Positions 350-60,499 of a stretch of DNA of 64,000 nucleotides are shown piece after piece. The notes under the pieces are model-generated. The model saw only the letters and a program-made list of their open reading frames with translations. It searched no databases and had not been told where the DNA came from. The position numbers were made by a program, and so were the translations under genes. The stretch comes from Tubulanus polymorphus (taxonomy: Eukaryota; Animalia; Nemertea), in assembly GCF_964204645.1 (NCBI RefSeq), contig NC_134036.1:1674001-1738000 (forward strand), written 5' to 3'. Positions within the stretch are counted from its first letter, which is position 1, and each line of letters opens with the position of its first letter.

Positions 350-2088
350 CTGTATTATCAGGTACTCAACTTCGGGATGATCGTCTCCTCGGCGCTGATG
401 ATATGGAAGGGTTTAATGGTCGTCACCGGTAGCGAGAGTCCCATTGTTGTCGTACTCAGGTAACGTCAGAGTCCGATTTCTACTTTTCGTGATTTTTTGA
501 TCGGTCATAAAATGTGCGTTTTTTTTTTTTAAACGATATTCCTGTACAGTGGATCGATGGAACCTGCATTTCACCGTGGCGATCTGTTATTGTTGACGAA
601 TTACGAAGAAGAACCGATCAGAGTCGGCGATATAGTCGTATTTAAAGTTGAAGGTCGCGATATACCGATTGTACACAGGGTACTGAAAGTACACGAAAAG
701 TAAGTTTATTTAAAACTTGCGTCTATTTGAACTTTGGTTGAGAGGACGTTGTGCGAACATTGTCAAAAAGGGGTCGAAAGAAATTGACTCGATAATTTGA
801 ATGTGTAGCGCTATGTTACCATGCCTACATACCTATGAAAAATGGTAGACATATATGGAAAAAACATTGTTAAACTTGATTTATCTAAGAGAATGTCGTC
901 TCGGTCGTTTCTCTGAAGACCTTTTTGACACTGATTCCATAAAGCGTAGAATGGATCAAAAATCGATGTTTTAGTTGATTATCCATTCAGCTGGTTATCC
1001 ATTCTGGTCCTATTGATAGCTATGTCAGATGTACCACTAAAACTGACTGAGCTAGGCCACCTGATGTCTTTTTAAGCAAAGTTGAAATAGACATTTTAGC
1101 TAAACAGAATGCGCTGTACAATCAGTTCTCTGAACCATGCACCTCCTTCAGATAATCAGATATTAGATTTTCCATGTATGCCGATTAAATTGCTCTGGTG
1201 CTTTCTAAAGTAAAAAATTGTAGTTCATTTTCATAGGTCAAATTTTGATATCCTGTTGTTTTTTTTTTCTAATGAATTTGCAGAGAAAATGGAGAAGTGA
1301 AATTTTTAACAAAAGGTGATAACAATTCAGTGGACGACCGAGGTTTATACGCTCCCGGACAGCTGTGGTTACGGAAAAAAGACGTCGTAGGCAGAGCTCG
1401 AGGGTACGCATTTTAGTCTTATCTCTTGCTTTACGTTTTTGTTGTTCAGATCTTGGGGTTTCCCGGACTTAGTAAGAAAAATCAGGGAATTTGGATTTTT
1501 GGTGTCTTGTTGTTCTTGCTGGTGACCAGTGACAAAGGAACCTCTTGATAATAAACAGCCTCCATTGGTTTAAGTGAGGACAAGAAGAACCTCTTGTCCT
1601 CACTGAGGTTTTCCTGTAATTTAATCAGGGAATTTGAATTTTTGGTGTCTTGTTGTTCTTGCTGGTGACGAGTGACACAAGTAATCTCTTGATAAGAAAC
1701 AGCCCCAAATGAGGATCTCATTCTTAGGTCAATCAGGGAATTTTGGATTCGCTGATCTGTGTGAACCCGGTTGTGAATGAGCACAGATAACTTGACCAAT
1801 TTTACTTGAACTCATGAAACTGGATCCAGATTTTAATTGTTTATTTCTGTGTTTTATTTTCCCTGCAGGTTTTTACCGTACGTTGGAATTATAACGATAT
1901 TGATGAACGATTATCCAAAATTTAAGGTACGAATATTTTCGAAATGTCATGACTATGCAACCGGCCCCTGGGTCCTTCCTATTTTGATTCTTTTCACTGA
2001 AATAAATGAAATTAATTGATTTATCTATTTATTTCAGTATGCTATACTAGCACTGCTGGGAGTGTTCGTTCTAATACACCGTGAATAG
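350..2088 (+). CDS. SEC11: Signal peptidase complex catalytic subunit SEC11 (first coding exon lies upstream of the window); exons 350-459, 550-699, 1284-1403, 1869-1926, 2038-2088
   Basis: Spliced translation [52 protein letters not shown]...[12 protein letters not shown]...[16 protein letters not shown]...FLPYVG...VLIHRE*. Catalytic S-M-E-P and H motifs present; all introns GT-AG with consistent phase. Confidence 0.97.
1480..1760. repeat. Intronic tandem duplication of about 143 bp (two copies plus a partial one)
   Basis: AATCAGGGAATTTG[G/A]ATTTTTGGTGTCTTGTTGTTCTTGCTGGTGAC at about 1480 and 1623; partial copy at 1731. Confidence 0.8.
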
Positions 2089-49341: not shown

Positions 49342-51200
49342 TTCTGAGAGTGGAATCTTTCTGGATGCGAGTGGAATTGTGACTTGTTGCGCATGTGGAT
49401 TCCAGCTGTGAATAGGACTTTCCGCAGCAACAGCAGTGGATGCTCATCATCAATGATAATATCGGGAATGGCAAGATAAATCTCAAGAATCAGACGCGAA
49501 CATTTTAATGACTTGTGTTTGTTGATCAGGACTAAATCAGATGAACTAGATAAGATATCTAGATATGTGGGAAAGTTTTAGAACTCTGAATCTTCTCATT
49601 GAGAGGATAAACAAACGAACACAATGGGAGAACTTGACTTCAGTTATAGTGAACTAACTGGACTATCAATGCATTGGTACTCGTAAAAAAGAAAACCATT
49701 CAGTGGTGGACTTCTGGAGGTGTGGAATTGTGGAACCCGGTGGAATATCATCACTGCTAGGCAAAGACTTGTGTGAGTAGAACTTATTATTAGTTTCCAA
49801 AACAATTATGAGAAAGCAGTTTTATCTATTTAGACATATTGTTTACTGAATTTCATAAGAATTGTCAATCGGGTTATTTCAGCAGCCTGTATTACAGGAA
49901 TTATAATTCAGGCTTTAAGTAAGAGTATCAATTTCTGGCTCAAAAATTATTTGAATATTTGGCTGATTAGAAAGAAAATCGTATTTCTGAACCAAATTTC
50001 ATCAAAATTAGTGACGAAATTAAGGGTCAAATCGCTAAATCCTGAATATTTCATTTTAGGGATTTCAGATCCAAAAACTAACTTCATATTCGTGATCAGC
50101 ACCCCAAAAAACATATCTGTACTAAATTTGATTATAATTGGGTCAAAAAAAATTTTTGACTTTGTACCCCATTTTTGAGGTGCATATTTTGGCCATAAAA
50201 ATCCTAATTTGGCCATGAAGATGAATTCCGATTCAAAATCTGATTGCAGATCCGGATTCTACACGCCAGAATACATCTTCCTACCAAGTTGCGAAGGAAT
50301 CAGAGAAAAAAAATTTTTCGCCGAAAAAAAACTCCTTAGATTTTTGCCATTTTTGGCAAAAAAATCGAATCTCTTCGATTTGCTTGAAATTTTAGTCCTA
50401 CGTAATCTCAGGGGTGCTGATTCCAAATCTGCAATCAGATTTTGAATATCTCAAAAACTCTGGGGTCCAAGGCCTTTTCAAATTTTAGGGGTCCGCCCAA
50501 AAATTCGAATTTCTCATTTCTGGTGCCCTGGATCCGACGAATTTTTTCAGATTCGTGATCAGCACCCGAGAATACATGTTGGTACTAAATTTCATCGAAA
50601 TCGGAGACAAAACATATTTTTACCTTAACCCTCATTTTGGGCTGTACCTTAGATTGCCATTTCTCTGATACACCGGTAACTGATTGGTAGCCTCAAATGT
50701 ATTATATTAAGTTTCATGTTTAATTTTAGGACGTTTGTCATCGATACGGTGGAACTATTGACGTTTGTGTTTGTTGATCAGGACTACATCAGATGAACTG
50801 GATAAATATGTGTGGGCAGTGTTAGAACTCACCGAGAGGATAAACAAACAAACGAACAAATATTGGGAGAACGAACTACATAGAACTTATAAGGAGAACT
50901 TGACTTCAGTTACAGTGAACTTTATGTCCACGAGGACTAAATATGTGACATTGCTGCTGATGGGATAAATATCTGTTTGAACTGAAAAATCTAAAACTGC
51001 TCGCGGCATCTAGAATCTGACGGATAGAAAACAACAAGGAACATAGAAGTTTAGGTGATATGCCATCCTATCCTATCTATCATTCTCTCTGCCTCATTCT
51101 CCATCTGCTTGCCATCTACCGGGTTGAGATAGGAACTAGTTCCTGTCTCGCCCGGTAGATGGCATTGTTTTTTTTAAATAAAATGTGCTTAAGCAATGGA
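49342..51200 (+). ncRNA. Possible spliced lncRNA divergent from HDHD2 (candidate exons about 49342-49771 and 50730-51200)
   Basis: Acceptors TTTCAG|49342 and TTTTAG|50730, donor GTGAGT at 49772, AATAAA at about 51177. The two exons share a duplicated segment (about 49513-49650 and 50764-50920). No credible ORF. Confidence 0.3.
49939..50650. mobile_element. Arm of an unclassified DNA transposon
   Basis: Repeated subterminal motif TTCGTGATCAGCACCC...GTACTAAATTT at about 50089 and 50552, with an inverted GGGTGCTGATTCC at about 50412. The ORFs here lack protein character. Confidence 0.55.
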
Positions 51201-51237
51201 TAAATAGGACTGACTTCCCCTGCGGGTTGTCTAGTGC

Positions 51238-51302
51238 GTCCCTGTAGCGTAGTTGGTAGGGTGCTGGACTGCTAGCCGAATGGTTGGTGGTTCAAATCCC
51301 GT
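51238..51302 (+). mobile_element. tRNA-derived SINE head or pseudo-tRNA fragment
   Basis: A box TAGCGTAGTTGG and B box GGTTCAAATCC at tRNA spacing; no acceptor-stem partner. Confidence 0.55.
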
Positions 51303-51620
51303 ATTTTGTTAAATGGCTGAATAAAATGTTGAATTTTACTTTTGCAAACAAGCTGTAAGAAATTCCTACTTTGAATTTGGAATAAATGCTTTGATTTGTA
51401 CTTTGCGTTTGTCCTTTCCTTTGTCCCTTCCTATGAGAAGTTGTAAGCGGAAGAGTCCTTTCCTTGGAATAGAGTCCTTTCCGAGGTCGAGTGTGAAGTT
51501 GTGAGGGGAAGAGTCCTTTCCAGAGCAAAGTGCCCGAGACAGAGATTTTTAGTAAAGACGAGCATTTATATAGATGTACGTTTATTTATTTACGTTACTT
51601 TATGCGGCAAAACGAATTAA

Positions 51621-52660
51621 CGGAGTAAAGTCTGCGTCTCCAGAGGTTTGAAGATGGTGCTGTAGTCGGAGTAGAGTCTGCGTCTCGAGGTTTGAAGATG
51701 GTGCTGTAGTCGGAGTAGAGTCTGCGTCTCGGGGTTTGAAGATGTTGCTATAGTCGGAGTAGTCTGCGTCTCGAGGTTTGAAGATGGTGCTGTAGTCAGA
51801 GTAGAGTCTGCGTCTCGGGGTTTGAAGATGTTGCTGTAGTCGGAGTAGAGTCTGCGTCTCGAGGTTTGAAGATGGTGCCGTAGTCGGAGTAGAGTCTGCG
51901 TCTCGAGGTTTGAAGATGGTGCCGTAGTCGGAGTAGAGTCTGCGTCTCGGGGTTTGAAGATGGTGCTGTAGTCAGAGTAGAGTCTGCGTCTCGAGGTTTG
52001 AAGATGGTGCCGTAGTCGGAGTAGAGTCTGCGTCTCGGGGTTTGAAGATGTTGCTGTAGTCGGAGTAGAGTCTGCGTCTCGAGGTTTGAAGATGGTGCCG
52101 TAGTCGGAGTAGAGTCTGCGTCTCGAGGTTTGAAGATGGTGCCGTAGTCGGAGTAGAGTGTGCGTCTCGAGGTTTGAAGATGGTGCTGTAGTCGGAGTAG
52201 AGTGTGCGTCTCGAGGTTTGAAGATGGTGCTGTAGTCGGAGTAGAGTCTGCGTCTCGAGGTTTGAAGATGGTGCTGTAGTCGGAGTAGAGTCTGCGTCTC
52301 GGGGTTTGAAGATGGTGCTGTAGTCGGAGTAGAGTCTGCGTCTCGAGGTTTGAAGATGGTGCTGTAGTCGGAGTAGAGTCTGCGTCTCGAGGTTTGAAGA
52401 TGGTGCTGTAGTCGGAGTAGAGTCTGCGTCTCGAGGTTTGAAGATGGTGCTGTAGTCGGAGTAGAGTCTGCGTCTCGAGGTTTGAAGATGGTGCTGTAGT
52501 CGGAGTAGAGTCTGCGTCTCGAGTTTTGAAGATGGTGCTGTAGTCGGAGTAGAGTGTGCGTCTCGGGGTTTGAAGATGGTGCTGTAGTCGGAGTAGAGTC
52601 TGCGTCTCGAGTTTTGAAGATGGTGCTGTAGTCGGAGTAGAGTCTGCGTCTCGAGGTTTG
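51621..52660. repeat. 44-bp tandem repeat, about 23.5 highly similar copies
   Basis: Unit GTCTGCGTCTCGAGGTTTGAAGATGGTGCTGTAGTCGGAGTAGA; produces the 44-aa-periodic ORFs 51617-52735 and 51972-52763. Confidence 0.97.
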
Positions 52661-53795
52661 TGTAAAAGCGGCTGAAAAACAAATTGATATTGAAATAAAG
52701 TGAATGTCTAATGAAGACGATAATTGAAAATCCAAAGATGATTTTTACGTACCAGAGCAGCAATAACTGTTTGTTCGATCCGGTTCTCGGGAGTAGCAGT
52801 TGCTACAGCAGCAGCAGCAGCACACGTGTTTGATGTTGACGGAAGTGGAAATTGGTTACAACCTAAACAAAAAACAAACCAGTCGATTTACAACTAAACG
52901 ATTCGATTCAAAATCAAAAGCATTTTGAGTAGTTTACATACACTAAATTTCTAACCTCATCAAAATATATGTCGACTTGAAAACTAGTAACAATCCGAAA
53001 ATCAGCAACAAAAGCAACTAGTCATCTGCTGTAGCGATCCGTGGTAATCCGCCATCAGTAGCAATAGCAGCAGCACCAGTCTCCTCTCCATCTCGGGATC
53101 TCCTCCGCAAACGTCAGGACCAACAGTAGCTGTCTCATATTGCGTTCTCAATCGCCAGGTGTCTAAAATTCCTCGACGTTCCAGTCTTTCCTAACATCAT
53201 CGGACGCTAATTAGTAAGTTGTTCGCTTGAAACCATACGTTCTTCACGCCTTTTGGTGAGCTCATATAGGTTGACCTTCATCGCTGGACATCGGTTCTCG
53301 GACTGGCATCGGGAGGCTCGAACCGCGCTTCTAATACCTACGTCGACCAATCAGCGACGTTGCATCATCGAGGCGACCGGAGTGGATCAATCAGAAGGCT
53401 CGATCGCGCATTCCTGTGGCAGACCCGAGTCCGTGACGCTAATCCTCGAGAACCATTCAATTCGTGCCAAACATTTTCAATGGGGCTTACAGGTCATCGA
53501 GTTTAATTCGACTATTCATAGAGAAACATATTGTTAAAGATAGAATACCGAATGTTACAATTTTAGCTTAAAGTATCATACTGCAATTTCATCTAAACTA
53601 TCCAACAAACTTTAGTGAAGATGTCCCCTTTATTTACGTTTAGTTTTGAACTATAATTCCGGCTCAATTTTACTATTTTCGAGTTTTGCTTCAGGAATAT
53701 TGAAGTTTGTGCAGTCACGCGGCACTATTGTGTAGCAGAGCGTATGGCAGGTCTCCAGTGAGCGATTCTCTATTCGATTGTCGTTTTTAGCCGAT

Positions 53796-54380
53796 TTTAT
53801 ACACACGTTTACCAGACATCGCTACGTACACATCTACTCTGAGTCTACTCTGGCGAAGTTTAAAAAATCATTGAAGTTTTGTCAATTTACCTGGAGATTG
53901 ATGGCTGCATTACTTACATTACATCTGCATTACATCTACGGAATTCTCGTTGGGATTTTTTCGAAACAAAAATAAACAATTTCCCAAACCCTCACCAGTC
54001 AACTTAAAATAACAAACTAATATTGTAAAAAAATCGAAGGTCCCTGGGGGAAATACTCCGCAACCTGGACCGGCATTGTGGGATAAATAAATAATTCAGC
54101 CAGAAACGACTGAATTAAACATAATTTACCCCACGCCAGATATTCTGTAGGACTCACGCATTAGCAACCTCATTCCAGGGAGGACAGTACTCTCGACTCG
54201 CCCGCTTACCGGAGATCACTTGCCACATCCTGACCCGCCTCCTCCGAGACTCGAACCTGGGCCACAGCGGTGACACGCTAGTCGCCGACCGACTAAGCCA
54301 TCCGGTCCGCCCGATTGGTGCCGGTAAACATTCACAGATATTCGCCGACCATTCACATTCGGACAAAACACTGTGACGTC
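53796..54380. repeat. Direct repeat copy 1 (about 590 bp), paralogous to 59644-60250
   Basis: Manual alignment from TTTTAT.CACACGTT.ACCAGACATC through GTGACGTC; offset about 5.87 kb. Confidence 0.95.
54027..54312 (-). ncRNA. Structured Pol III-type RNA with tRNA/SINE-like head, copy 1
   Basis: A box TGGCTTAGTCGG (54300-54289), B box GGTTCGAGTC (54257-54248), long hairpin 54139-54070, T7 terminator 54033-54027. Confidence 0.7.
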
Positions 54381-55000
54381 ACAGTGTGTTGAAAGCCAAT
54401 GCACAGCATTGAATCAGAAAATCAGAATTATTTCAACGATTAAATAATTTTCGAACTTTCAAATGAGAGTTTTTTAACTGCACCAGCAGTTGAGCGTGTG
54501 GCGTCCTGGCAACATGCCAGCTTTTCACCTTAGTGTCTGATGTACCACAGTATGGTTGTACTAAGAACGACGGATATCTCTGTCGAGACCAGGACTGAGT
54601 GAACCCAGCTTTATATAGCGGTCCTGGAAATCTACATGTCACTATCTTCTGATAACGCGCTCCTATTTCCTCTCATCACGGGAGTTCAGACCAAATGTCT
54701 TACACCAGAACAAGTTTTATTTCATTTTTTATTTTTCTATTTCGATTAATTTAGGAATTTCAGGGCGATTCGTTAGATTGGTTATAGAAACGATCTAAAA
54801 TTCTAAGCAATGATTGTACAACTGTCCTCAGAATGATCCAGGATGATATGAAAACCTGAGACAAATTTGACTATAGTGGAATTTAAAACTGGATAATGAT
54901 AATGATATTTATTTGTGTTATATTTTCTTTTTACAATATTAAATCGTAATTAAATACATTATTATAATAATTCCAATAATAATTAATATTTTTTTCAAAT

Positions 55001-56322
55001 AGGGAAGTTTCCAGTGACCAGGCGCCATTTTGAGGCGGTCCCGCATGGTTGGACAGATTTTAACATTTTTTCAACTAAAACTTTAAGCGCGATTCATTGT
55101 AGTCCACCACTCTTTTAGCACAAAAATTAAAGTCATGAATCGTTAAAAAGGTGACCATTTCTATTTTCTGATGGTGTTTAATTCATTTTTCTCGACTGCA
55201 ACAATCGAACACAGTTACAGTTTAAAAAAGATACGTCACTTTAAGGAAGGCGTACTTCTCAAAAAATTGGTAATTTTGTGTTATTGACTGTAACTTTTTC
55301 ATGTTAAGAGATACAATGTAGAATTTTTCATTGAAGATAGAGTTTTATCTCAGGATTTTGTTGACACTGCATTCGTAAAAATATCTTCATAGAAACGCGC
55401 GTGGCCACCGGTTGAGTCAAGCGCAAAGCGCGCACGAGTGGATGACCGTCGAGTTTCTGCATGCGCGTATTGCGCTATTTTTATGGCAATTTTCTAGATA
55501 CTAAATATTTTTATAGATTAAAATCAGATACTTTGCATTAGGAAAAAAACTTGTCTTATCAAGAAACTTGTCAAGAAACTTGTCTTATCTGACCTAGAAT
55601 GTTCAATCGTCGAACGTTAAACATTGGACCGAGCGCAGTGTCGATCGAATAGAGGATAACGGCTTCTAGGTGACACGACACAAAGATGCAGTCTTTCAAT
55701 AAAAACAAGCGGTCGTTGTAAACATCAAGCATCGTTTCAAATCTAATTATGCTGGGGAGACACCAAATACCCTCAATTCAACATGGAAACAATCAAACGA
55801 TGATTTAAATTAAAAAAAACTTTAAAATTTCCATGAAATTGGCTTAGAACGGGTATGCAGAAAATCGACGGTCAACCACTCGTGCGCGCTTTGCTCTTGA
55901 CTCAACCGGTGGCCACGCGCGTTTCTATGAAGATATTTTTACAAATGTAGTATCAACAAAATCCTGAGATAAAACTCTATCTTCAATGAAAAATTCTACA
56001 TTGTATCTCTTAACATGAAAAAGTTACAGTCAATAACACAAAATTACCAGTCTTTTTGAGGCGCATTCCTTAAAGTGACGTATCTTTTTTAAACTGTAAC
56101 TGTGTTCGATTGTTGCAGTCGAGAAAAATAAAATAAACACCATCAGAAAATAGAAATGGTCACCTTTTTAACGATTCATGACTTTAATTTTTGTGCCAAA
56201 AGACGAATGGACTACAATGAATCGCGCTAGAAGTTTTAGTTTAAAAAATGTTAAAATCTTTCCAACGATGCGGCCCCCGCGGGACCGCCTCAAAATGGCG
56301 CCTGGTAACTGGAAACTTCGCT
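55001..56322. mobile_element. Non-autonomous foldback DNA transposon with about 490-bp TIRs, AG...CT termini and AT target-site duplication (ISL2EU-like)
   Basis: AT|AGGGAAGTTTCCAGTGACCAGGCGCCATTTTGAGGCGGTCCC ... GGGACCGCCTCAAAATGGCGCCTGGTAACTGGAAACTTCGCT|AT; inverted similarity spans about 55001-55495 and 55822-56322; no ORF. Confidence 0.88.
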
Positions 56323-56593
56323 ATTGTTTTCTTTTGCGATACAATCATAATTGATTACATTCTCACAATAATTCTAATAGAAATTACTTTTTTCGTCAAA
56401 TTCTTTCTTCTTAACTTTTAGTCTTTTTTTCTGTTATGATATATAACGTAATAGAATGAATGAGAGTCTCATTCCATAAACAGGTCCTAAAAAGATACAT
56501 TCTTTAACTTTTAAGAAATTCACATATTTCAACTATCTATGGATTTAATCCTTGATGAAACGTGTTATATCATGTTTGATTAAAACCGAATTT

Positions 56594-58508
56594 CTATTTT
56601 GTACGAGTGAGTACAGTGTTTATATTATAAACTCGCAGTGAGTCCGTTTTATTACTGTTATCCCAGTGACGGATAACTACAGTGTTACTGTCATATATTT
56701 TGTATATCTCATATGTCACACTGTCAGTAGAGTTCAATACTATACGCGGGTGATCTATAAACCCCTCATCATTATATCTCATACTAATCACGGCTCCTTT
56801 GTTACCAGTCCTAGAGTTTACCGATAATAATACATGTTTATCATTGATTATACACGGGGACCCCGCAAGTGGATCAAATGTTAGTCCGGAATCTTCCACA
56901 TTGATAAAACTGATCAATTCCGCATCAGCTGTTAGATAGAGTAATCTTCCCGATCTATTACAGTATACAAACATGCGTCCCCGCGTGTCGACATCTAAAC
57001 TGTTGATATATTCGTACTCTCCATCCGGGAGCTGATATTTTTTCACACGGTTTCTATCAATTAAACTATTTACAGGGTTTTCTAATAGACGTAAAACACG
57101 AACGTCTCTATCTAACTGGATGTAAATATTGTTACCGCGAATGACTAGTGTTCCACATCCAGACACAATATCAGTGACATCTTCCTCTAACACTTTGTCC
57201 TGATCTTTATATTTTCTCAGGCAGAGTTTCTTGTTTTTCTTCACGACTACAAACAGGTGACCGTTACTATCTGTATCGAGTCCTCGTACATAATCATCAA
57301 CACACTCTATATATCTCTTCATTACATTATTATCATCCATGTAATATATATCACTGGACCCCCAGAGGTCCGCACATATTATACGTGACTGTTGACCCGT
57401 CTGCTCACCAGGTAATGACGTCACTAGACTGGGTCTGAAGTCTGTCTGAACCTGTTTACTGATCGTTAATGAATCAATGACGTCACCAATAGAACTCTCC
57501 ACTTCATCCATTCTCCCTATGACGTCACCAATAGATATCTCCAATTTATCTATTCTCCCTTTGACATCATTGATTGTTCTTCCTGTGACGTCATCGATAG
57601 TCTTATTCAGTTTTACTTCCAGTTGTTGTTCAGTACATGCTTCAAGTTGTTGTTCAGTACAGCACCGGTTCAGCCTCTCTTCAAGTTGTTGTTCAGTACA
57701 GCACCGGTTCAGCCTCTCTTCAAGTTGTTGTTCAGTACAGCACCGGTTCAGCCTCTCTTCAACTGTGTCTATAGTGCGCTTAAATTGAGAGAATTGATTT
57801 TCTAAATTATCATGAAACAGTTTGACATTGTCAATTAGGGAATGATGACGTTGATCAATGTCTGGTTGAACTGTTCGCGCTTCACTGATCGGTACAGTGT
57901 TCACTCTAAACACGTATTCGTTTCCGTGACGACAAGCACCGATTACAAGACCCGAACCTATTGATTGCGGAGATTGTTGAAGTTTCGATTTGTAGATTTC
58001 ACACATTTCTTCATTTTCACATTTAACAATAAACACCTGATTCTGAGGTTGATGATTGAACGGGATCGGATGATTCGGTATCTCCACACCAGAGGGCGCA
58101 TCTCCCCATTCTAATTTCACCTGAAATAGAAAACGACATTTTTATTTGACTCTCACCTCGCAGTGGTCACCCGTTTAGTATCACACGCGGGTGATGATGA
58201 AACTGAAGATGAGAATTACAGATTCTTACCTCATCAAACGGCATCATCTGCACCGCTATTACGTGACCTGTATAGATGGTTTTTAGTTCGTGTTTAATAG
58301 CAGCCTCTAATTCTTCACACCACAGAGTTATATCAAGTTGTAATATATTTCCATCCGCAGTTATTCGATCAGATTCCAAATTAAACAGCGGCTGATAAAA
58401 GTAATTTTGTGTCGTTCTGTACTCATTATCCTGATCGGACCAAACGTTAACGCGACGCCCTTTGAAAGGTACGGAAATCTCGAAACGATCCGGATTACTT
58501 GTAGCCAT
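56594..58508 (-). CDS. Two-exon 601-aa protein (58508-58230, 58120-56594): uncharacterised N-terminal domain, coiled coil with 13-aa repeats, C-terminal NHL/SMP-30-like beta-propeller
   Basis: The two track ORFs join in phase 0 across a 109-nt intron (GAG|GTAAGA ... TTTCAG|GTG). Heptad-like region; propeller-type blades VRGLDTDSNGHLFVV and INSLDVDTRGRMFVY. Confidence 0.8.
57620..57762 (-). repeat. Coding 39-bp tandem repeat (EERLNRCCTEQQL x3 plus a partial copy)
   Basis: TTCAAGTTGTTGTTCAGTACAGCACCGGTTCAGCCTCTC at 57641, 57680, 57719; identical copies. Confidence 0.95.
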
Positions 58509-59643
58509 GTTGACCGTCAGTAATTAACACCAGCAATGAACTGAATGCGGTTTGGGCGTTTAACAGTCAGGTGATATTAGTCCCAAGGTCTGATTCTAAT
58601 CGCGGTGACCGGTATTTTCGGTTACGAACCCGATTATCAGATCTAGTGACGCAGTTTAATGTGTCTGATAAATATTATAGACATACTAGAAATGGTTTCC
58701 TGTGAACTAGATAATAAGTAATCAACTCAGGTGTTTTATAAGAAAATTCATGTGATATGTCCAGGGTCTGATTCTAATCAGGGTGACAAATCGGTATTTT
58801 GACATTCCTGTCAAATGTCATGAACGCAGTTTTTTGTCGACATACTTTGAAAAGACACAAATAAAATTGATAACAAGAGTTTCAAGTTCTACGTTCCCAC
58901 TTGGAAAGTGATCTGAAATCTGGTGTTTGATTAGTATTTGAAAGCATCCGTAAAGCGAATCTCTTGATTATCATAAAGGCCAAGGGCAGGAAACCACCAA
59001 ATGACATCCGCCGTATGAAAATTGTCTTCAAGTGGCGAATTAATATTTCGGATCATTTTCAAATAATCTATGCGCATGACTTTGTTATCACGGATTTTTT
59101 TCAAATATGACTCACGAATGTGTCAAGAGTCAAGTGCACGTCATTGAACTATGGAACATTAATGTATAAATGTCTGGGACGATTGAACCGGTTTCGAGCG
59201 GGCGACAAAATCTGGTTTTTTTTTACATTTCATAATCAAGTTTATGGAATAAATCAATAGTTAACTTTATCTGGTAAATCGCTGCTCATAAGAACTCGAC
59301 TTGAACTAAAATCTGTAAAAGGTGAATTACCACATTTAATTTGAAAACATATATTGCAACAATTCATGATAATTTTAGTTTTTCAAACTCGAAGTATCGA
59401 CTGAACCAAGTCACTGGTCAGAAATTAACTTCCAGTTAAGAGTCTACTGTATCTGTGTTTGTTGTAACGAGGTTCTATCCGTTTGAATAAACTTAATAAA
59501 CTGAGCATCATGGATTACCTAACAAGGTCTCAAATGAATCAGTGTAGGTCTAGTCAACCTCCGGGTATCGGCAGCAAACAGATCCCGATGATGAGAAAGT
59601 AAGGAATCGCTGATCTGGAAAAAGCAACGTCGATTGAACACGT

Positions 59644-60250
59644 TTTATGCACACGTTCACCAGACATCACTGCGTATACATCTACTCTGAGTGGAAGCTG
59701 GCGAAGTTTAAAGAATCATGGAAGTTTGTCATCACTTGTAATGAAATTACCTGGAGATTGATAGCTGCATTACTAACAAAGATCTACGGAATTCTCGCTG
59801 GGATTTTTTCGATTTCTTCGAGGAATTAAACAAGAGTAAAAAAAAATTTCCCAAACCCTCACCACTCAACTTAAAATAACAAACTAATATTGTAAAAAAA
59901 TCGAAGCCCCTGGTGGAATTACCCGCTGCCGGGACCGAGATGACGAGATAAATAAATAATTCAGCCAGAAACGACTGAATTAAATAATACTTTACCCCGC
60001 CACCGGTGGGATATAGGACTCACGCATTAGCAACCTCATTCCAGGGAGGACAGTGCTGCGCGTAGCCACCGTCCGCTTACCGGAGCTCATTGCCACATCC
60101 TGACCCGCCTCCTCCGAGACTCGAACCTGGGCCACAGCGGTGACACGCTAGTCGCCTACCGACTAAGCCATCCGGTCCGCCCGATCGTAGCCGGTAAACA
60201 TTCACAGATATTCGCCGACTATTCACATTCGGACAAAAGGCCGTGACGTC
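59644..60250. repeat. Direct repeat copy 2 (about 605 bp)
   Basis: Aligns to 53796-54380. Confidence 0.95.
59894..60182 (-). ncRNA. Structured Pol III-type RNA with tRNA/SINE-like head, copy 2
   Basis: Same A and B boxes as copy 1, hairpin 60007-59934, T7 terminator 59900-59894. Confidence 0.7.
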
Positions 60251-60499
60251 CAAATGGAAAGACGGTGATCATGGGTTAACAACTAAACCCACAGACTGTC
60301 AAACAACTTCAATCGGGCTCAATTGTAAATAAATGCAACTTCTACTTTAGAATCTAACTTTCCACATCCCACATATTTTCATTGAATTGCAAGCTGTTGA
60401 TTTGATTCTATTTTAAGAATTATTCATCGGCTTTTTTCACCCTACATGTTAGCCATTTGAAACGTCTCTTTGTTTTGATTTTGTCAAAAAACTATTCGT

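Follow-up and report, generated by a model that had tools for sequence, protein, structure and literature searches.

The stretch analysed here, referred to as the window, comprises 64,000 nucleotides (nt) from the nemertean Tubulanus polymorphus (contig NC_134036.1, forward-strand positions 1,674,001 to 1,738,000), which corresponds to C12:1674001-1738000 in a 268-Mb assembly of 77 contigs. Its minus strand carries two copies, A and B, of a candidate gene for a structured RNA that RNA polymerase III (Pol III) would transcribe. Both copies belong to a family of 65 copies in the genome. They are built from the following parts.

54027-54312 (minus): copy A, representing the majority isoform A; spans about 280-286 nt between the G at 54312 and the T-run; 95-100% identical to more than 40 other genomic copies
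59894-60182 (minus): copy B, isoform B, with three genomic copies; 289 nt; identical copies at C12:124165 and C12:174713
54148-54188 in A, 60014-60054 in B (minus): 41-nt invariant block, identical in the two copies
54082-54119 in A, 59947-59984 in B (minus): 38-nt invariant block, identical in the two copies
54189-54201 in A (state a, 13 nt), 60055-60072 in B (state b, 18 nt) (minus): slot 1, unalignable between A and B
54133-54147 in A, 59999-60013 in B (minus): slot 2, 15 nt each, unalignable between A and B
54070-54139 in A, 59935-60005 in B (minus): hairpin 2, 70 nt; slot 2 and the initial part of slot 3 form its base, and the 38-nt invariant block forms its top
53988-54026 (minus): conserved stretch of about 40 nt after the T-run of copy A, nearly as conserved as the RNA (mean pairwise identity 0.94-0.99 to +325)

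A first-pass annotation of this DNA had described near-identical constant blocks separated by unrelated slots, and the alignment of the two minus strands bears this out. The head of the unit has one difference between the copies in its first ~92 nt, and the 41-nt block, found twice in the window, was not found in any of 100 shuffles. The 3' segment (slot 3) aligns patchily. The copies also have common flanks of ~75 nt upstream and ~250 nt downstream, which are far more similar than the slots; the earlier remark that the slots had diverged more than the downstream flank was therefore correct.

A family of 65 copies with a constrained core

The 34-nt core of the 41-nt block has exactly 65 matches in the genome at three mismatches or fewer, 62 of them exact, and a control pattern has none. 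The copies are distributed over five contigs (25 on C12, 22 on C11, 16 on C9 and one each on C8 and C22). Most lie within the first 4-6 Mb of C12, C11 and C9 at spacings of 6 kb to 1.4 Mb, including one run at ~42-kb intervals. The family consists of about 63 intact copies, each a candidate gene, and two decayed ones, and it is probably lineage-specific. Sequence-level statistics were obtained from 51 copies, and slot states were counted from the printed pattern matches.

The surroundings of the copies reveal how the family has multiplied. Searches with the head alone and with 0.9 kb of downstream sequence each returned the same 65-66 first-look candidates. The 0.9-kb matches that were listed each lie just past a head, and neither search found a copy of the flank that lacks the RNA unit. 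Flanking DNA is common to every copy examined, and most copies sit at the edge of a repeat of ~5 kb or more. Because the flanks are common to every examined copy and no flank occurs without the RNA unit, the family members are DNA-level duplicates that have spread as DNA and not as RNA. A short interspersed element (SINE) would be expected to occur in many copies with unrelated flanks and target-site duplications; here there are 65 copies, and those examined have common flanks. The unit also has no A-rich, simple-repeat or long interspersed element (LINE)-derived 3' tail; it ends in a T-run, which is followed by conserved flank.

The core of the unit has been conserved far more tightly than the DNA around it. 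In an alignment of 48 copies, scored in 25-nt bins, the mean pairwise identity lies between 0.90 and 1.00 over the stretch +1 to +325, its dips falling at the slots. The values are 0.84 from -24 to 0, lower further upstream and 0.75-0.85 just past +325, so that the profile drops sharply at -24 and at +325. The 286-nt core keeps an identity of ~0.965 (0.95-0.97) whatever the class of its flanks, whose identity ranges from 0.75 to 0.98. The core thus does not track the divergence of its surroundings. The two decayed copies, L058 (C12:9255295-9258328) and L059 (C12:10618820-10621853), show what lost constraint looks like in this family. Both lie outside the main clusters, with flanks 78% identical to those of copy A; they have accumulated additional substitutions and small deletions, and their T-run is interrupted. 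Their upstream cAMP response element (CRE), a promoter motif described below, lies at -41 instead of -69. CpG decay was dropped as a further test of constraint because the observed/expected ratio of CpG is ~1 across the window.

Promoter, folding and slot states

The annotation had proposed that A and B boxes and a T-run mark a type-2 Pol III unit, and all of these are present in both copies. Two further elements, a TATA-like box and a site for CRE-binding or activating transcription factors (CRE/ATF), lie upstream.

54289-54300 in A, 60159-60170 in B (minus): A-box-like element at RNA positions 13-24; matches the consensus TRGCNNAGTNGG by eye
54247-54257 in A, 60117-60127 in B (minus): B-box-like element at RNA positions 56-66; 10 of 11 matches to GGTTCGANNCC
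54337-54344 in A, 60207-60214 in B (minus): TATA-like box CGAATATC at -32/-25
54374-54381 in A (minus): CRE/ATF site TGACGTCA at -69/-62; in copy B, 60244-60251 reads GGACGTCA, which is one letter off
54027-54033 in A, 59894-59900 in B (minus): run of seven T, the presumed Pol III terminator

The A and B boxes are separated by 31 nt in both copies, within the 30-60 nt of type-2 genes; the boxes are identical in A and B and nearly invariant among 39 sequences. A T-run of at least six (T6-T8) is found in all 49 intact copies sampled, and both decayed copies have T4. The exact CRE occurs between -41 and -69 in 32 of 51 copies, and near-matches occur in more. Real type-2 Pol III genes, namely 7SL, EBER, vault, 4.5SH and 4.5SI, are reported to be marked by a CRE/ATF site near -50 together with a TATA-like box at -31/-24, a combination reported to be missing from SINE copies (PMC7279448). 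The family has both upstream elements of genes of the 7SL, vault and 4.5SH type. Judged by these motifs, the putative promoter is the same in kind as that of real type-2 Pol III genes, with the CRE placed further upstream.

Folding of the RNA singles out hairpin 2. Its predicted energy is -31.5 kcal/mol in A and -29.4 kcal/mol in B (z-scores of -7.5 and -8.8), despite the unrelated sequences of its arms. On the plus strand the same segments reach only -19.7 (A) and -6.7 (B) kcal/mol. The RNA strand is taken to be the minus strand because hairpin 2, several pairs of which are G-U, folds well only there. Slot 1 forms the 5' strand and the tip of a small hairpin that is closed by the start of the 41-nt block, and this holds for both isoforms. 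In the alignment of 39 sequences, the pair 183/245 is U-A in 24, C-G in 13 (all of them in the C12 cluster) and G-C in two, with no uncompensated form. Pairs 185/240, 207/222 and 17/34 have also changed on both sides. None of 500 shuffles reached this count of four, and slid registers gave 0-2. Hairpin 2 is kept in both isoforms, and the two-sided changes, few independent events within one genome, indicate helices maintained by compensation.

The slots occur in very few forms. Across the 65 copies, slot 1 is in state a in 57 (56 plus one deletion variant) and in state b in eight, and slot 2 is in state a in ~62 and in state b in three. Copies with state a of slot 2 differ by one or two point variants, which follow the chromosome. 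The two slots are also not locked together, as five copies on C11 combine state b of slot 1 with state a of slot 2. Nearly identical flanks can surround different cores: over 820 nt of flank, L032 (with a B core) matches L010 (with an A core) at 98.3% identity, whereas identity in the core is 88%, and L035 and L030 show the same pattern. Such mosaics on near-identical flanks point to gene conversion among dispersed copies, of which they would be the signature. The first-pass annotation had itself raised patchy gene conversion as an alternative to diversifying slots, and these mosaics are what that alternative predicts. The genome has no other source of the B-state segments, whose divergence from the A state far exceeds that of any flank. 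Both B-state slots (59999-60013 and 60055-60072, minus strand) contain the same 7-mer, CGGTGGC, and state b of slot 2 holds a perfect 10-nt palindrome, CCACCGGTGG. The common 7-mer and the palindrome could be a hint that the B segments have a templated origin.

The slots were also compared with the rest of the genome. Four slot probes, searched over their full 22-23 nt, have no antisense match in the genome itself at three mismatches or fewer. The 34-nt constant block has no genomic antisense match at the same threshold. In sense orientation, the probes and the block match only family copies, apart from one chance-level match with three mismatches outside the family.

The long repeat unit and neighbouring features

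The two copies in the window differ in how much of the repeat accompanies them.

49647-54386 (minus): long repeat unit with copy A at its 5' edge; the RNA gene, ~1.1 kb, a 44-nt satellite (51621-52660), then ~2 kb more
59644-60257 (minus): short unit holding copy B; only ~75 nt upstream and ~250 nt downstream are common to the family, followed by an unrelated protein-coding gene

A comparison of 3.3-kb and 10-kb loci gave the order of the repeat as ~20-75 nt of upstream sequence (more in some subgroups), the 286-nt unit, ~1.1 kb, the 44-nt satellite and at least 2 kb beyond it. The 5' limit of homology varies among subgroups. No transposon ends and no target-site duplications were found for the long unit, and no Pfam domain in its open reading frames (ORFs). 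The satellite in the window contains 23.6 copies with 95% matching. It is present in the long unit of nearly every family copy and yields spurious long minus-strand ORFs of 263-372 amino acids (aa). In the public sequencing runs, the piece of the long unit at 53070-53300 reaches a contig depth of up to ~16,850, against ~200-2,300 for the RNA unit, and therefore belongs to a repeat of much higher copy number. Antisense to the long unit, a 94-aa ORF at 53253-53537 (plus) has no Pfam match; it is also open in the diverged loci L052 (3790-4107) and L053 (3795-4271), on the minus strand in both.

The genes adjoining family copies vary between copies. Upstream of one C11 copy, an ORF at 802-1614 (plus) of L053 encodes five ShK domains with threonine-rich linkers. 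Two further features of the window lie close to the copies.

56594-58508 (minus): protein-coding gene that follows copy B directly on its downstream side; two ORFs, 113 and 508 aa long, with an in-frame 39-nt tandem repeat (57640-57762); no Pfam match
54998-55493 and 55824-56325: pair of ~500-bp inverted repeats just upstream of copy A, 90.7% identical, with a ~330-bp spacer; probably a foldback or terminal-inverted-repeat element

Interpretation and comparison with known systems

The units match no known RNA family. ARAGORN finds no tRNA genes in the window, and Rfam 15 reports no family there at its gathering score. No Rfam hit overlaps the unit at E<=10 in 53800-54500 or, in a further scan, at E<=1. 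The Rfam tRNA model has no match at E<=10, and the head shows no cloverleaf with an anticodon. No covariance model of SRP, 7SK, RNase P/MRP, vault, Y or other Rfam families matches the unit. The annotation had reached the same view by eye for SRP, 7SK, RNase P/MRP, vault RNA and a complete tRNA. A full-text search of papers for sequence words of the family returned nothing.

We consider it probable, if well short of certain, that the copies are a lineage-specific family of SINE-like Pol III genes for a structured RNA of ~280 nt, absent from Rfam and present in two isoforms. This reading builds on the observed copy number, the common flanks, the constraint on the core, the motifs and the compensated, strand-specific hairpin. 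Transcription, the choice of polymerase, protein binding and a function for the RNA are predictions from this sequence evidence. The earlier proposal of an undecayed family distinct from a dead SINE fits the constrained core, the conserved promoter and terminator and the compensated hairpin. The slots are best read as belonging to two isoforms of one structured RNA, with no diversifying guide system.

Under this reading, the architecture would be SINE-like, with a tRNA-related head containing the A and B boxes, a body and a T-run. Multiplication would proceed by DNA-level duplication of the multi-kb repeat unit and not by retroposition. Pol III would start ~12 nt before the A box, helped by the TATA-like box at -32/-25 and, in most copies, by the CRE at about -41 to -69, and it would stop at the T6-7 run. 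The RNA is predicted to fold into a 5' head domain, a central region that contains the 41-nt invariant block, and a long, AU-rich hairpin whose top does not vary. In a ribonucleoprotein, the invariant blocks would probably serve as the surfaces to which proteins bind. The slots would supply a hairpin tip and helix arms, in which pairing matters and sequence does not; isoforms A and B could for that reason coexist. Purifying selection and gene conversion would together keep the core uniform and shuffle the slot states.

Several observations weigh against this reading. Seven sampled copies on C9 lack the CRE, their upstream DNA having been replaced up to -20. The covariation comes from paralogues of a single genome and represents few independent events. 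The folding energy of the whole RNA is unexceptional (z-scores of -1.1 and -1.5), and only hairpin 2 stands out. No orthologue was found in another species, and exact-word scans of metagenome and viral collections with the conserved blocks gave no matches. Part of the uniformity of the core could come from gene conversion alone. Five public runs contain sequence of the unit; none is recorded as RNA, and their contigs cover the flanks too. The depth of the run contigs over the unit is ~10-30x that of the low-copy upstream flank, a pattern that fits DNA copy number, and the five runs are read as DNA.

The alternatives differ in what they take the conserved unit to be for. It could be a module inside a large, selfish repeat, a mobile or duplicating non-coding element of ~5-10 kb and of unclassified type, and be conserved as a promoter or cis-acting RNA for the spread of that element, not for use by the host. 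In nearly every case the copy does occupy one particular edge of a common multi-kb unit, along with the satellite and further common sequence; the copies are clustered in parts of three contigs, some in runs ~42 kb apart, and part of the long unit is a much higher-copy repeat. We nevertheless regard this explanation as unlikely, since neither defined ends nor target-site duplications nor any coding capacity were found, homology stops at different 5' points in different subgroups, and the RNA module of copy B is intact although only ~250 nt of the unit accompany it. The CRE and TATA-like box are, moreover, the signature of host Pol III genes (PMC7279448).

Ordinary SINE subfamilies, in which retroposed, non-functional copies appear patchy through subfamily structure and gene conversion, would account for the tRNA-related head with its boxes, the SINE-like length and the mosaics of slot states. 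This explanation is already largely refuted and is very unlikely: there are only 65 copies, and all those examined have common 5' and 3' flanks, there is neither an A-rich or LINE-derived tail nor a target duplication, the core evolves several times slower than the flanks, and the terminator and upstream promoter elements are conserved. Hardly any weight is given to the suggestion, made in the first-pass annotation, that the slots are hypervariable targeting segments of a guide-like RNA. Slots that cannot be aligned where the flanks are 98% identical, and a change between A and B faster than drift, would suit such a role. A guide system would, however, be expected to show many different segment sequences, and each slot has two states, with point variants besides. 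The slots are also paired arms or a hairpin tip, with no free single strands, and neither an antisense nor any other slot match indicative of a target was found in the genome at up to three mismatches in 22-23 nt.

For the favoured family of structured RNA genes, the closest parallel among known systems is rodent 4.5SH, along with 4.5SI and primate snaR and BC200, which are likewise lineage-restricted small RNA genes derived from SINE-type Pol III units. 4.5SH also combines A and B boxes with a TATA-like box at about -31/-24 and a CRE, and each of its genes lies within a DNA-amplified repeat of 4-5 kb (PMC7279448). It has no sequence relationship to the present family, whose head is tRNA-related and not 7SL-related, and whose predicted RNA is about three times longer. 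The 65 copies lie 6-1400 kb apart on three contigs, whereas 4.5SH has hundreds in a tight tandem array. tRNA-derived SINEs have a similar layout, in which a body of 150-200 nt follows a tRNA-related head containing A and B boxes. The family differs from them in its low copy number, its common flanks and its lack of the hallmarks of retroposition, and it has a constrained core and, instead of an A-rich tail, a conserved internal T-run. Vault RNA, 7SL and EBER genes have the same hybrid promoter of internal boxes, TATA-like box and CRE/ATF site, but the unit matches none of their covariance models and its CRE is at -69/-62 in most copies, compared with about -50.

The tRNA-miRNA-encoded RNAs (TMERs) of murine gammaherpesvirus 68 are also Pol III units in which stem-loops and a T-run follow a tRNA-like 5' part, and hairpin 2 has the size and stability of a microRNA precursor. 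The head of the family, unlike that of TMERs, forms no cloverleaf according to ARAGORN and the Rfam tRNA model, so that processing by tRNase Z is doubtful; the family is also cellular and TMERs are viral. One speculative and quite improbable version would make the RNA a modular Pol III regulator or precursor, in which transcription is driven from the head, proteins gather on the invariant blocks and hairpin 2 gives rise to small RNAs ending in the replaced stem base. If so, isoforms A and B would yield small RNAs with different seeds, and the family would represent, in an invertebrate, either a cellular equivalent of the tRNA-miRNA units of herpesviruses or a modular regulator akin to 4.5SH.

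To our knowledge, lineage-specific Pol III RNAs derived from SINE-type units (4.5SH, snaR and BC1/BC200) are few and almost all mammalian. A regulatory function has been assigned to 4.5SH only recently. A 65-copy family that lies in an invertebrate-type animal genome, is missing from Rfam and is far better conserved than the DNA around it would be a further case from outside the mammals and would offer a natural contrast between two isoforms. It would also illustrate cleanly how RNA genes dispersed through a genome can evolve in concert and with compensatory change.

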